This document shows, one piece after another, positions 101 to 6,079 of a stretch of 6,079 nucleotides of DNA. Position numbers and translations under genes: made by a program. The notes under the pieces are model-generated. The model was not told where the DNA came from. It made no database searches and saw only the letters and a list, made by a program, of their open reading frames with translations. Numbering within the stretch: the first letter of the stretch is position 1; every line of letters begins with the position of its first letter. The stretch is taken from positions 1 to 6,079 of the forward strand of contig MTSL01000077.1 of NCBI GenBank assembly GCA_002794465.1. Reading direction: 5' to 3'. The DNA comes from Paramicrosporidium saccamoebae KSL3. Lineage: Eukaryota; Fungi; Cryptomycota.

Positions 101-406
101 ATGCAATTTACAGCGTTCTTTCTGCTACTTGCATCTACTGTAGCAACGGCCAGCCAAATATCTGTTACTGCACCTATGGAAGGCAAAGTAGTTGAATTGA
201 TTGTCCAGGTTAACCAAATTGTAACGTACGGGCAACCTCTGGTGAAGCTTGAAGTAATGAAGCTGGAACAGGTTATTTGCTTGGGGGATGGTGCTGAAAC
301 AGGAAAATGGTATAGAGTCACCGGACTAAGGAATCTGAATGGAATTGCGGAAACCGGCTCCGTGGTAGCCATCTTGGAACCGGCTGAGCGAAAAGCCTAC
401 TCCTAG
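101..406 (+). CDS. Small protein (101 aa): putative signal peptide plus biotinyl-attachment (biotin/lipoyl barrel-sandwich) domain with intact acceptor lysine
   Basis: Residues 22-59, VTAPMEGKVVELIVQVNQIVTYGQPLVKLEVMKLEQVI, match the biotinyl-domain pattern AP(M)xGxV...V..G..V..GQ.L..LEAMKME. Pro25 sits 29 residues before Lys54 (codon 260-262), the same spacing as in the Propionibacterium 1.3S biotinyl subunit. The N-terminus MQFTAFFLLLASTVATA is uncharged and hydrophobic with an A-x-A site. It is paralogous to 569..868. Caveat: the frame is open (without ATG) back to the window start. Confidence 0.8.
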   Translation: MQFTAFFLLLASTVATASQISVTAPMEGKVVELIVQVNQIVTYGQPLVKLEVMKLEQVICLGDGAETGKWYRVTGLRNLNGIAETGSVVAILEPAERKAYS

Positions 407-568
407 TCCGTTTACAATACAGCAATTCGATAAGGATATCACTACATTTTAATCGTAGCCACACCGATGCTACCGAATATCAGTTAGATAATTCACGGGG
501 AATAAATACTTGATAGTTAGAGCCCTCGTTCAAGTATGGATATTCTCAGTTACTAGGGTGCAGTCTTT

Positions 569-868
569 ATGCAGCTTGCGACGCTCTTGTCGGTTTTTTT
601 TTCGGCTGCGGCAATGGCCAGTAAAATTGAGCTCAGAGCCAATCGCTCAGGACAAATTACTGTCTATCTAGTCAAGATTGGCGAAATACTAAAACCTGGA
701 CAAATGGTAATGTTGTATCGGGACTTGGATTCAAACAGTGGATCGTATGTGATGCGTTTTCGCCGTAAGGTAGAGGAAGGCGTTGCCTATAAAGTTACGG
801 GACTTTTGCCAGTGGGCTCCTTGATTGAGATGGACACTGTTGTAGCACGCCTAGAACCAATGACATGA
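569..868 (+). CDS. Small protein (99 aa): putative signal peptide plus degenerate biotinyl-like domain lacking the acceptor lysine; paralog of 101..406
   Basis: Gap-free alignment with ORF 101..406 over residues 1-54 (shared M1 Q2 S12 A15 A17 S18 I20 A24 G28 V35 I40 G44 Q45). Shared C-terminal block E.G..Y.VTGL.......E...VVA.LEP. About 27 identities by hand. In-frame TAG at 554-556 fixes the ATG. Position 54 is Asp, not Lys. Confidence 0.75.
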   Translation: MQLATLLSVFFSAAAMASKIELRANRSGQITVYLVKIGEILKPGQMVMLYRDLDSNSGSYVMRFRRKVEEGVAYKVTGLLPVGSLIEMDTVVARLEPMT

Positions 869-2257: not shown

Positions 2258-4561
2258 ATGGACGTTGAAGAACTGGCGACACTATTTGGTCGGGTTGGAA
2301 TTGAAGCCAACAAGGCCACAGAGACGGCAAAGAATAAGAAACTCGCAAAGAACTTTGAAGAGGCCATCCACGAGGCGGGCTGCGCACAAGGCACCGACCG
2401 TCCAGTGGGACTGCTTCTGTACACTTTGGCCGCCACCTGTCCCGCCAACGCGCTAAAACACCGCGCATACATTGCAGGACGAGTTGCTGCACGTGATTTA
2501 AAGAGCGAGGACCAGTTGCAAGCGGCATACAAATTTGTGGCGGCACTCCCCGAAGAGAATCCCATCGACAAGACGTCCTTTGATGCGGCTTGTGGAGTGG
2601 GAGTAAAGGTTTCCGAGGAGACGGTGCGTAATGCAGTGGAAATGGCAGTGGAGACGCATCGAGAGGGACTGTTGAGGGACCGTTATGCCTACAATATGGC
2701 GACAATTATGAAGTCACTGCGGGGACACGAAGACTTGCGCTGGGCAGACAAAAAACTGATGAAAGAGTTGGTGGATGCGCGTGTTGCCGACCTGCTGGGA
2801 CCGCGGGACAGTGAAGAGGAAATCCGAAAACGCAAACGTGAAAGCAATTGCGCCTCCCCCACCACTGCCGAGGCGGGAGTAAGGATGTTTGTGGGCGAAG
2901 TGGCGCAGCTGCATCGTCCCGGGGAGAATCCTCAGATCAGCGAAGAGATTCGCCAGAAACATTTGCAGGCGACGGGTGGAAAGGTGGTGACGCGTTTCCC
3001 TCCCGAGCCAAACGGATTTCTGCACATTGGCCACGCCAAGGCCATTAATCTCAACTTTCGTTATGCTGAGGCACACGGCGGTCAGTGTTATTTGCGCTTT
3101 GACGACACAAATCCGGAAGCCGAAGAGCCGCGATACTATGAGGCAATCAAATCAAATGTGGAATGGTTGGGCTTTACTCCCTACAAGATGACAGCCGCAT
3201 CTGACTACTTCCAGGAACTATATGAGTGCGCTCTGACACTGATCCAAAAGGGCAGGGCATATGTCTGTCATATGAACCAGGAGGACATTTCTCTTAGTCG
3301 TGGTGGCGCTGATGGAAAAGGCGCCCGTTATAACAGTCCATGGCGTGAACGCAGTGTGGAGGAAAATTTGGCTGAGTTTGAAAAAATGCGTAGTGGCCAG
3401 TACGAAGAGGGTGCTGCCTGTCTGCGTCTGAAACAGGACATGCAAAGCGGAAATCCATTCATGTGGGACTTGGTGGCATATCGTGTGCTGCGTCATCCGC
3501 ATTGTCGCACAGGCACCACATGGTGCATCTATCCAATGTACGACTTTACGCATTGTCTGTGTGACTCGTTGGAGAATATTACCCACTCAATGTGCACCAC
3601 TGAATTCATCAATGCTCGCGAGGCCTATTATTGGGTCTGTGACAATGTGGAAGTCTACAAGGCGGTGCAATGGGAATATGGCCGTCTGAACATTACCAAC
3701 ACCGTCTTGTCCAAACGCAAACTGACTAAGCTGGTTGACGCAGGAATCATTAGTAGTTGGGATGATCCACGTGTGTACACTTTGGCTGCTCTGCGTCGTC
3801 GCGGCTTTACTCCCCGCGCCATCAACGCCTTTGTGGAGGAGATTGGTGTCACTACGGCCTTTAGCGTTGTCGATGTGAAAAAGTTGGAGGCTCATGTCCG
3901 CGACGACCTCAACAAGTCCACGTTGCGTCGCATGGCGATCCTGGATCCGCTTCTCGTCAAAATTACCAACTTGGCAGATGACTTTGAAGAGTTACTTTCC
4001 ATTCCCAATGACCCCCGAGATCTTGCCAAGGGCGACTCGCTCCTTCCTCTTACTAATCAGCTGTACATTGATCGCAGCGACTTTCGCACAGAGGACGATC
4101 CCAACTTTTTCCGTCTCACCCCCAATCAGGCCGTGGGCATTTATCGCGTCGGTGTCCTCTCCTGCACACGCTACGAGACGGATGCTGATGGCAAGGTGAC
4201 GCTTATTGAGGGTACCATCAATCGCGCCGATGACGCTCCCAAGCCAAAGACCTTTATCACCTGGGTGCCCCTCTCTGAAAAGTACAATTCGCCCCTCAAG
4301 GCCGAGATCCGTCTGTATTCGGCCCTCTTCAAGTCGCGCAACCCCGATAATGCTCCAGGCGGCTATTTGAATGATGTCAATCCCCAATCTTTGACCATCA
4401 TTGAGGAGGCGTTGGTGGATCCGCGTCTCACTGACGCCCACGTCGAGGACAAGTTCCAGTTCCAGCGTGTCGGCTACTTTTGTGTTGATCCCGACTCTAC
4501 TGACAAGAAGCTCGTCTTCAACTTGACCGTCTCCATCAAGGAGGATCCCAACAAGAATTAG
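2258..4561 (+). CDS. GLN4: Glutaminyl-tRNA synthetase, eukaryotic cytosolic type (767 aa, no introns)
   Basis: Class I motif PPEPNGFLHIGHAKA (HIGH at 3023-3034), RFDDTNPE, the KMSKS-equivalent VLSKRKL (about 3704-3724), and C-terminal FQFQRVGYFCVDPDS. The eukaryote-specific N-terminal extension MDVEELATLFGRVGIEANKATETAKNKKL resembles the start of yeast Gln4. ATG at 2258 has good context (gccATGg); the track start at 2240 is TTG. Confidence 0.97.
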   Translation: MDVEELATLFGRVGIEANKATETAKNKKLAKNFEEAIHEAGCAQGTDRPVGLLLYTLAATCPANALKHRAYIAGRVAARDLKSEDQLQAAYKFVAALPEENPIDKTSFDAACGVGVKVSEETVRNAVEMAVETHREGLLRDRYAYNMATIMKSLRGHEDLRWADKKLMKELVDARVADLLGPRDSEEEIRKRKRESNCASPTTAEAGVRMFVGEVAQLHRPGENPQISEEIRQKHLQATGGKVVTRFPPEPNGFLHIGHAKAINLNFRYAEAHGGQCYLRFDDTNPEAEEPRYYEAIKSNVEWLGFTPYKMTAASDYFQELYECALTLIQKGRAYVCHMNQEDISLSRGGADGKGARYNSPWRERSVEENLAEFEKMRSGQYEEGAACLRLKQDMQSGNPFMWDLVAYRVLRHPHCRTGTTWCIYPMYDFTHCLCDSLENITHSMCTTEFINAREAYYWVCDNVEVYKAVQWEYGRLNITNTVLSKRKLTKLVDAGIISSWDDPRVYTLAALRRRGFTPRAINAFVEEIGVTTAFSVVDVKKLEAHVRDDLNKSTLRRMAILDPLLVKITNLADDFEELLSIPNDPRDLAKGDSLLPLTNQLYIDRSDFRTEDDPNFFRLTPNQAVGIYRVGVLSCTRYETDADGKVTLIEGTINRADDAPKPKTFITWVPLSEKYNSPLKAEIRLYSALFKSRNPDNAPGGYLNDVNPQSLTIIEEALVDPRLTDAHVEDKFQFQRVGYFCVDPDSTDKKLVFNLTVSIKEDPNKN

Positions 4562-4623: not shown

Positions 4624-4649
4624 GGGACCACCAATCATAAGCGGATACT
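4624..4649 (+). repeat. 26-bp dispersed direct repeat, copy 2 (GGGACCACCAATCATAAGCGGATACT)
   Basis: 24/26 identical to 1981..2006. Starts 63 nt after the GlnRS stop codon. Confidence 0.9.
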
Positions 4650-4688
4650 GTCTAATAGGGTCTGTTTCGCCCATGGTCAATTGAACTG

Positions 4689-4747
4689 GCCAATCAATGA
4701 TTCTATTCAACGACGGGGGCCATTCATTCCTGATAGATATATATATC
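4689..4747 (+). promoter_or_regulatory. Putative promoter: GCCAATCA box plus palindromic AT tract GATATATATATC
   Basis: GCCAATCA at 4689-4696 and GATATATATATC at 4736-4747, followed 30 nt later by acc-ATG at 4778. Confidence 0.35.
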
Positions 4748-4777
4748 TTGAAGTATCTACTCCACACACATCCTACC

Positions 4778-5386
4778 ATGATGGATATTAGCACGGTCAA
4801 TGATCGTTCTAGGAATGACTCGCAAAAACGACAGGAGAATGTCAGCACAGTGTACGAACTTTGCTGGATTCTTCACATTCACATCCTTTTACTTCCCCTG
4901 CTTTTCCCAGTAAATAAGGCTGAATGGTTTTCATATCGGACACCAATTGGGCTCACAACACTATTTTTCATCCTCCTGGCGATCCTTAAATATCGCGCAG
5001 CGCCTCATAAGAAAACATGCAAATCACCAAGCATTGATAGTGGTGGCAAACACACAAATAGCTTAGGGAGATGTCTGCAAAGGATCTTTTACTGTGAAAC
5101 AAAAATGACTCCTTGTAGCAATCCCCTTCTCGCTAGTCTCTGGAGAGTGCTGGGGTATCATGTTGTGTGTAAGCTCTTTCCCCAGCGTATTGTTTACGTT
5201 TACTTTGCAGTGGCCTGGTTCTCTTATGTTGTCCAGCCTTTCCTGTCTGGATTTCTCGGCGAATACTTTGGGCGAAAGGACGATTTGGTCTACAACGGTC
5301 GGCGTTTTAAAGTTATCCTTTCCGGAGCCCATTATTCCACGATTCAGGATGAGAATCAGGACATTTTGTATTACCCCAGATATTGA
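4778..5386 (+). CDS. Hypothetical membrane protein (202 aa; 229 aa if started at 4697)
   Basis: Long open frame with three hydrophobic stretches (LCWILHIHILLLPLLFPV; IGLTTLFFILLAILKY; IVYVYFAVAWFSYVVQPFLSGFL). No family recognised. Start 4778 is preferred because of its Kozak-like context downstream of the CCAAT and AT elements. Confidence 0.4.
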   Translation: MMDISTVNDRSRNDSQKRQENVSTVYELCWILHIHILLLPLLFPVNKAEWFSYRTPIGLTTLFFILLAILKYRAAPHKKTCKSPSIDSGGKHTNSLGRCLQRIFYCETKMTPCSNPLLASLWRVLGYHVVCKLFPQRIVYVYFAVAWFSYVVQPFLSGFLGEYFGRKDDLVYNGRRFKVILSGAHYSTIQDENQDILYYPRY

Positions 5387-5605: not shown

Positions 5606-5966
5606 TCAACTGTGAATGCTGACGCGGTCAAAGCAAACCTGACGGGACGAAGCTGTCCATTATGTGAATTGGTAGGTGAGGCCCATTCTAATGATTTCAA
5701 GAGCTTGCTCAGATAATCCTATCCCGATAGATGAAAGTTGGATAAGGTGGTCCCCAGAACCAGAAAACATTCATCGCGATACGTGATCAGTCCGGTCCAG
5801 GTTATTGCAAATAGTATGGCTCTCACCGCCGAACGAAACAAAGACAAATATAATGGGCACGACTGAAAAGGTTAATGGCTGCTTTCCCAACTTCACTCGG
5901 CTCTATTTCACACCATACCAAGAACGTGTAGAAGACGGCATAGGTGATAATACACGACAAGTACAT
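5545..5966 (-). pseudogene. Probable disrupted copy of a small hydrophobic-protein gene, paralogous to the fragment at 5997..6079
   Basis: Minus-strand frame 5871 to 5545 is open except for one TAG (5721-5719). That TAG aligns with CAG (Gln) in the neighbouring copy: SNFH--LSG*DYLSKLLKSLEW versus SNFRDSLPGQERLNRILKPLEW. The 5' boundary relies on an inferred intron 5918 to 5863. Confidence 0.35.
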
Positions 5967-5996
5967 TAAACCTCGACCTGTCCCTGAAAGCTCCCT

Positions 5997-6077
5997 CTAC
6001 TCGGGCGCTATCCATTCTAGAGGCTTTAAGATTCTGTTTAGCCGCTCCTGTCCCGGTAGGGAGTCTCGGAAGTTGGA
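5997..6077 (-). CDS. Possible 3' end of a gene entering from beyond the window (...SNFRDSLPGQERLNRILKPLEWIAPE*)
   Basis: Only 26 codons are visible. Support is codon-level conservation with 5683..5742 (synonymous pairs CTA/CTG, TTA/TTG, AAG/AAA, CTA/TTA). It could also be a pseudogene fragment. Confidence 0.3.
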   Translation of the reverse strand, partial: SNFRDSLPGQERLNRILKPLEWIAPE

Positions 6078-6079
6078 CA

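Follow-up and report, generated by a model that had tools for sequence, protein, structure and literature searches.

The window analysed here, by which we mean the whole stretch of 6,079 nt, is the first part of the 49,171-nt contig MTSL01000077.1 (assembly GCA_002794465.1), with which it is identical in sequence. Accession MTSL00000000 stands for the genome of Paramicrosporidium saccamoebae, which belongs to the Rozellomycota, a group of fungi, and is an obligate intranuclear parasite of Saccamoeba (PMC5701793). At the start of the window there are two small open reading frames (ORF1 and ORF2) in tandem, each consisting of a signal-peptide-like leader followed by a single domain, of the biotinyl type in ORF1 and diverged from it in ORF2. 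The original prediction had taken them for a pair of secreted, stand-alone biotinyl-domain proteins that would suit an intracellular parasite, and the lifestyle of the organism agrees with the latter point. The features of the pair are as follows.

101-406, forward strand: ORF1, 101 aa
101..151, forward strand: ORF1 leader, residues 1-17 (MQFTAFFLLLASTVATA), signal-peptide-like, uncharged, with A-x-A at -3/-1
152..388, forward strand: ORF1 biotinyl domain (BCCP-type barrel-sandwich), residues 18-96, identified by Pfam, phmmer against the PDB, hhalign, AlphaFold2 (AF2) and Foldseek
260..262, forward strand: ORF1 codon AAG, encoding K54 in E-V-M-K-L, opposite the biotinyl-lysine of EAMKM in alignments with 5gu9/2d5d and with 23 BCCP-like proteins
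389..406, forward strand: ORF1 C-terminal tail (RKAYS) and TAG stop
407..568: intergenic spacer, 162 nt, GC 0.38, each of the three forward frames containing stops
569-868, forward strand: ORF2, 99 aa
569..619, forward strand: ORF2 leader, residues 1-17 (MQLATLLSVFFSAAAMA), with an in-frame TAG upstream at 554
620..868, forward strand: mature ORF2, whose biotinyl-like domain is diverged and its hairpin remodelled (V61-M62-R63-F64), and TGA stop
755-757, forward strand: ORF2 codon for R63

ORF1 and ORF2 are paralogues. BLASTP aligns their products with 30% identity over 97 aa (E 2e-10). In a Smith-Waterman alignment the two proteins score 98, whereas none of 2000 shuffles exceeded 56; for the mature parts without the leaders the figures are 80 and 47. 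The prediction of two paralogues of about 100 aa lying 162 nt apart is therefore borne out by both the coordinates and the alignment scores. There is no similarity left between the two at the DNA level and the duplication must therefore be old. No further copy of the pair was found within the first 10.4 kb of the contig.

In a codon alignment of the paralogues, identity at codon positions 1, 2 and 3 is 0.45, 0.61 and 0.36, respectively, compared with about 0.27 expected from composition. Such an order (2>1>3) is a signature of selection at the protein level and indicates that the products have long been under purifying selection. The probability of finding 100 open codons by composition is 0.0055 for each ORF, and both frames are intact at about 100 codons. 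Taken together, the codon-position pattern and the two intact frames show that ORF1 and ORF2 are, or long were, real genes. The GC content at third codon positions (GC3) is 0.44-0.45 in the pair, compared with 0.59-0.62 in the Myb and glutaminyl-tRNA synthetase (GlnRS) genes further along the window and an intergenic GC of 0.38-0.43; the low values are consistent with low expression or fast evolution. The exact 99-aa product of ORF2 is present in NCBI nr and UniRef, and the 101-aa product of ORF1 is absent from both. The presence of ORF2 in nr does not amount to transcript evidence because the published annotation retained all ab initio predictions (keep_preds=1).

Several of these observations could also be explained if the two ORFs were decaying or unexpressed relics of a duplicated carboxylase biotinyl domain, without function. 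There are only two members, restricted to one species and with no known partner, their GC3 is near the intergenic composition, unsupported predictions were kept in the published annotation and the 101-aa form of ORF1 is missing from the public protein collection. We nevertheless regard this as improbable, as the two proteins have diverged to 30% identity without either frame being broken, the pattern across codon positions points to purifying selection over a long period and the layout of the leader is preserved in both copies.

The leaders have the anatomy of signal peptides (n-region, h-region of 7-15 residues and c-region with small residues at -3 and -1) in both proteins, as judged by manual reading and hydropathy. 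ORF1 starts with MQFTAFFLLLASTVATA followed by SQ; its first 26 residues are uncharged and the first charge is E27. ORF2 starts with MQLATLLSVFFSAAAMA followed by SK, and its first charge is K19. Both leaders comprise 17 uncharged residues with a hydrophobic core of 9-15 residues, a small polar c-region and Ala at -3 and -1, so that the 17-residue hydrophobic, uncharged leader ending in A-x-A that had been described for each protein is confirmed. Among the first 40 residues, the highest Kyte-Doolittle average over 10 residues is 2.33 for ORF1 (calculated on a 121-aa gene call) and 2.12 for ORF2. The putative cleavage sites lie after A15-T16-A17 in ORF1 and A15-M16-A17 in ORF2, and the first strand of the domain starts directly after the predicted site. 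The similarity between the two leaders is compositional and does not exceed that of shuffled sequences: the layout is common to both while the order of residues has diverged, as would be expected of signal peptides. A mitochondrial presequence was considered and rejected, since neither leader has Arg or Lys before residue 19. These features suggest that both leaders are signal peptides directing entry into the endoplasmic reticulum (ER) and secretion.

It is also conceivable that the proteins are not secreted, the N-terminus being a membrane anchor (a signal anchor or a tether to an organelle membrane) or untranslated and the domain acting inside the parasite, where it might serve a biotin enzyme of the parasite as carrier or regulator in a BADC-like manner. 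The run of 26 uncharged residues at the start of ORF1 and the alternative start at Met16 of ORF2 would fit this. Additionally, there are membrane-anchored biotinyl-domain proteins (such as P0008, P0047 and P0003) among the weak bacterial matches in the database search described below, and stand-alone cytosolic biotinyl proteins are known, such as BLAP of Bacillus subtilis (1z6h). We think it unlikely, however, because a core of only 9-15 residues followed by a polar, small-residue c-region with A-x-A is typical of a cleaved signal peptide and short for a transmembrane anchor. The same 17-residue layout occurs in both copies and ends exactly where the domain starts, and the first alternative start in ORF1 is Met26, which is inside the first strand.

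The frame of ORF1 is open from position 2 to 406, that is, to the start of the contig, as had been pointed out in the original prediction. This raises the question of whether 101-406 represents the final exon or the C-terminus of a larger carboxylase with its upstream part beyond the contig start, and biotinyl domains at the C-terminus are typical of pyruvate, propionyl-CoA and methylcrotonyl-CoA carboxylases. We consider this very improbable indeed. An open stretch of the 33 codons upstream of ORF1 has a chance expectation of about 18%, the 33 residues they would encode have no carboxylase similarity in Pfam and PDB sequence searches, and the Pfam and PDB matches begin at residues 12-22 of the 101-aa form. 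In ORF2 an in-frame TAG precedes the ATG by five codons (15 nt), and its product likewise starts with Met-Gln and has the same leader. The upstream stop of ORF2, the shared leader and the stops in all frames of the spacer indicate that the duplicated unit already consisted of leader plus domain, and both proteins are therefore best described as stand-alone proteins rather than carboxylase fragments. The contig itself begins (positions 1-15) with 12 C followed by TAA, and the frame of ORF1 is open up to this run, which could be either an end artefact of assembly or sequencing or the degenerate end of a chromosome.

The mature part of ORF1 is, on the evidence of sequence comparison and a predicted structure, one biotinyl domain with the barrel-sandwich fold of BCCPs. 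ORF1 matches PF00364 (Biotin_lipoyl) with 26.5 bits, above the gathering score of 22.1, the match being limited to residues 22-59. With the pair and 23 BCCP-like proteins, hhalign gives a probability of 99.0% (E 3.6e-18) over residues 11-96 of ORF1, which takes in the whole mature protein, and with ORF1 by itself the probability is 98.8% (residues 11/12-96). The best phmmer matches of ORF1 among PDB sequences are all biotinyl domains, with the BCCP of Pyrococcus horikoshii first (E 8e-8). An AF2 model of ORF1 made with 64 BCCP-like proteins in the alignment is all-beta with a mean pLDDT of 85.4; with only the two paralogues as alignment the pLDDT was 49.6 and the model unusable. Foldseek aligns the former model to BCCP structures with TMt values of 0.83-0.87 and a root-mean-square deviation of 1.6-2.5 A (0.86 to 5gua/2evb), and its best 50 matches are all biotinyl or lipoyl domains. 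The structure was modelled for ORF1, and it is to ORF1 that the assignment of the fold by model applies.

The identity of the domain in ORF2 rests mainly on its paralogy with ORF1. There is no Pfam match to ORF2, and hhalign with ORF2 by itself gives a probability of 95.3% for the first half only (residues 13-49). The proposal of a biotinyl domain behind each leader thus holds fully for ORF1; for ORF2 it holds chiefly through the paralogy, and the acceptor lysine is missing. Features common to both proteins and not found in canonical domains are a two-residue TG insertion, the motif E-x-G-x-x-Y-[RK]-V-T-G-L and a terminal V-V-A-x-L-E-P. There are no linked carboxylase components, the 99-101-aa proteins consisting of leader and domain only. 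None of the NCBIfam models for BCCPs and carboxylases reaches its cutoff for the pair, so that membership ends at the level of the domain superfamily.

The two copies differ at the position where biotin would be attached. The acceptor motif [AV]-M-K-[ML] is V52-M53-K54-L55 in ORF1, in register with AMKM, and K54 within L-E-V-M-K-L-E lies opposite the biotinyl-lysine in L-E-A-M-K-M-E of P. horikoshii. ORF1 presumably fits the PROSITE biotin-attachment pattern at all positions but the last. In ORF2 the corresponding sequence is V-M-R-F, preceded by a 9-residue insertion in the MAFFT alignment, and the lysine is replaced by R63. A modifiable lysine is therefore present in ORF1 only.

The pair was compared with public data by an exhaustive HMMER search in which a profile of the pair was run against 1.84 billion representative proteins. 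Only the two proteins of the window scored below E 1e-10. The other 62 matches (E 1.5e-8 to 1e-3) cover the first half of the domain only and comprise ordinary BCCP-like proteins of prokaryotes, adaptors of the HlyD type and a small number of biotinyl proteins with a membrane anchor. None of these 62 has a short cleavable-type leader with a single domain; the closest in architecture is P0047, a bacterial-looking protein of 109 aa whose N-terminus is charged and whose anchor is long. In word-index homology searches each of the two proteins matched only itself, and no relative came out of JGI metagenome contigs scanned with degenerate patterns of the pair. No relevant precedent was found in the literature on secreted biotinyl domains, BCCP effectors, the Paramicrosporidium secretome or biotin in Microsporidia and Rozella, and the genome paper of P. 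saccamoebae and its supplements (PMC5701793) mention neither biotin nor carboxylases, secretion or signal peptides. The original prediction that no such family had been described is upheld by these searches, and its call for further paralogues turned up none among the representatives or in the part of the contig mentioned above. As far as public data go, the pair is a species-restricted family. What appears to be new is the combination of a secretory-type leader with a lone biotinyl domain; the domain itself is known. It could derive from a carboxylase of the parasite, from the host or from a bacterium, 80 residues being too short to resolve the origin.

The best non-self match in the search (E 1.5e-8) is P0003, a 439-aa ENA metagenome protein on a 23-kb contig. 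Two hydrophobic segments at its N-terminus are combined with a linker rich in Pro, Ser and Gln and with two complete biotinyl domains that carry MKM motifs, a layout that we take to resemble that of inclusion-membrane proteins of intracellular bacteria.

We give about an even chance to the interpretation that ORF1 and ORF2 form a species-restricted family of the secretory pathway, in which the biotinyl fold has been reused as a small beta module without carboxylase chemistry. This is supported because there is a signal-type leader in both proteins, there are no catalytic partner domains and the lysine has been lost from ORF2 while the family motif was kept. The intranuclear life of the parasite, the other tandem families near the pair and its lower GC3 also fit, as does the cofactor-free use of this fold outside the cytoplasm in bacterial periplasmic adaptors. 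The leader would bring the nascent chain into the ER, where signal peptidase would cleave after A17. The remaining beta module of about 82-84 residues would then end up outside the parasite cytosol, at the parasite's surface, in its spore wall or in the nucleoplasm of the host around it, and would act there as a small, stable binding or structural unit and not as a swinging-arm carboxyl carrier. A role as carboxyl carrier appears unlikely for three reasons: biotin carboxylase and carboxyltransferase partner domains are absent, translocation into the ER would separate the protein from a cytosolic biotin ligase (biotin ligases are cytosolic or mitochondrial) and the acceptor lysine has been lost from one copy.

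There are several points that weigh against this interpretation. The leaders lack a positively charged n-region, and with 26 uncharged residues the N-terminus of ORF1 may be a signal anchor. The internal Met16 of ORF2 would yield a leaderless domain if the transcript starts 3' of the first ATG, and ORF1 could in principle have an upstream exon, given that its frame is open to the contig start. A codon-usage log-likelihood against the GlnRS and Myb genes did not discriminate the coding frame of the short genes. The confident model of ORF1 depended on the BCCP alignment, as is seen from the pLDDT obtained with the paralogues alone. Lastly, ORF1 has kept a near-perfect biotinylation hairpin (E-V-M-K-L-E), which is unexpected if biotin is irrelevant.

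Because of this near-canonical hairpin, the idea of a biotin sink or decoy that was part of the original prediction stays alive for the ORF1 copy. ORF1 might be biotinylated by the parasite ligase before translocation, or by host holocarboxylase synthetase in the amoeba nucleus, and serve as a scavenger, sink or decoy, with the lysine-less ORF2 as a modulator. E51-V-M-K54-L-E56 corresponds residue for residue to EAMKME of the P. horikoshii BCCP, which has been crystallised with its ligase (2ejf), and the entire fold recognised by the ligase is predicted to be intact in ORF1. Cotranslational entry into the ER would normally bypass the cytosolic ligase. In Escherichia coli, preproteins with a biotinyl domain can be modified before Sec export (PMC3418276), and lysine-less regulators resembling BCCPs are known in plants (BADC). 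ORF2 carries all the family-specific features and yet has no acceptor lysine, so that a biotin-centred role cannot be the function common to the family, and the silence of the genome paper on biotin counts in the same direction. We therefore hold a biotin-centred exported protein to be quite unlikely. A more specific version, in which apo-ORF1 is released into the host nucleus and biotinylated by host holocarboxylase synthetase, so that host biotin is harvested or sequestered or the ligase titrated, and ORF2 is a BADC-like competitor, seems to us distinctly improbable; if true, it would be the first case in which a eukaryotic parasite exports a biotin carrier domain and directs it at the host.

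In textbooks, biotinyl domains are the swinging arms of carboxylases in the cytosol or in organelles. A eukaryotic family with a lone biotinyl domain behind a secretory leader would show that the fold has been recruited outside metabolism, and this in an obligately intranuclear parasite near the origin of the Microsporidia. It would also offer a tractable host-exposed or spore-surface candidate in a lineage for which almost no effectors are known. The pair has a built-in contrast, with the lysine present in one copy and not in the other, by which biotin-dependent and biotin-independent ideas are readily separable. If the leaders are non-functional, the pair would be an orphan set of stand-alone BCCP-like proteins and a minor curiosity.

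Downstream of the pair there are two genes with recognisable products.

1089-1664: two-repeat Myb protein
2258-4561: glutaminyl-tRNA synthetase with the eukaryote-specific N-terminal domains, identified by Pfam

The closest solved relative of the GlnRS is the yeast enzyme (4h3s, E 7e-219). Contamination by bacterial DNA was ruled out because the rest of the window, with a eukaryote-type GlnRS and a Myb protein, is eukaryotic. Rfam and tRNA scans of the window gave no match. We regard an antisense ORF at 34-372 (112 aa), for which Pfam gave no match, as spurious. There is a 35-nt motif (GGGAYCACCAATCATAAGCRGATACT...) at 1981-2015 and again at 4624-4658, the copies being 86% identical. One copy lies 3' of the Myb gene and the other 3' of the GlnRS gene, each upstream of the next gene. 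Its 15-nt core has two matches where 0.03 are expected, and the motif could serve as a common regulatory or 3'-end element. Directly upstream of the GlnRS start codon (2258), at 2191-2242, there is a 13-nt tandem repeat (TAGTGCCTTGTCG) of about four copies with 84-86% matches.

The biotinyl pair adjoins other tandem families without Pfam matches. An ORF of 229 aa with hydrophobic segments at 4697-5386 of the window (forward strand) has tandem paralogues at L001 6935-7657 and L001 9310-9981, both on the forward strand, to which it is 71% and 48% identical; the first 55 or so residues are identical in copies 1 and 2. None of the copies has a Pfam match and this is a further lineage-specific tandem family. 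Interleaved with it are minus-strand ORFs at L001 6119-6421, L001 7981-8733 and about 5719-6079 of the window, with near-identical N-termini (MSPxQxTxMxLGVGGILIHLFQIISTQH...). The 250-aa minus-strand copy has no Pfam match, and the first copy is broken by a run of N near L001 6085, which is probably an assembly gap. The arrangement suggests that a two-gene unit of about 2.3 kb, made up of a member of the 229-aa family and a minus-strand ORF, is repeated in tandem.

The closest known systems are the BCCPs and biotin-dependent carboxylases (PF00364; P. horikoshii 2d5d/2evb; the 1.3S transcarboxylase subunit of P. shermanii), with which the pair shares the fold and homology over the whole domain. 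The hairpin of ORF1, E-[AV]-M-K-[ML]-E, has its lysine in register with theirs. In contrast with BCCPs, the pair has a secretory-type leader, lacks linked carboxylase domains and the N-terminal BCCP oligomerisation region, carries the TG insertion and the E-x-G-x-x-Y-[RK]-V-T-G-L motif in both members and has lost the lysine in ORF2. BLAP of B. subtilis, at rank 47 among the Foldseek matches, is like the pair in being a single small domain of the biotinyl/lipoyl type, but it is bacterial, cytosolic and leaderless and only the common fold is shared.

The BADC proteins of plants are lysine-less BCCP paralogues that act as negative regulators of heteromeric acetyl-CoA carboxylase (ACCase) (PMC12706156; bioRxiv 10.1101/2023.08.31.555777). 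They provide a precedent for a biotinyl-type domain without its acceptor lysine that works by binding and not by carrying CO2, a logic that ORF2 resembles. However, BADC proteins are plastid-targeted, keep the BCCP N-terminal region and act on a multi-subunit ACCase, and the HMMER search revealed no specific sequence relationship between them and the pair. The lipoyl-like domain of bacterial HlyD/RND adaptors is a case in which the barrel-sandwich fold is used outside the cytoplasm, free of cofactor, for packing between proteins. The matches of ORF1 to the corresponding models (PF13533, PF16576, PF13437 and TIGR01730) are weak and all below cutoff. The adaptors are bacterial proteins of 300-450 aa in which an alpha-hairpin interrupts the lipoyl domain and beta-barrel domains come after it, whereas the domain of the pair is continuous.

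In their general character, ORF1 and ORF2 also resemble the lineage-specific signal-peptide families of Microsporidia and Rozellomycota, which are likewise small, species-restricted, arranged in tandem and fast-diverging, and which are candidates for host-exposed or spore-wall proteins. Those families generally have no recognisable domain, whereas the mature part of this pair is an identifiable metabolic carrier domain.

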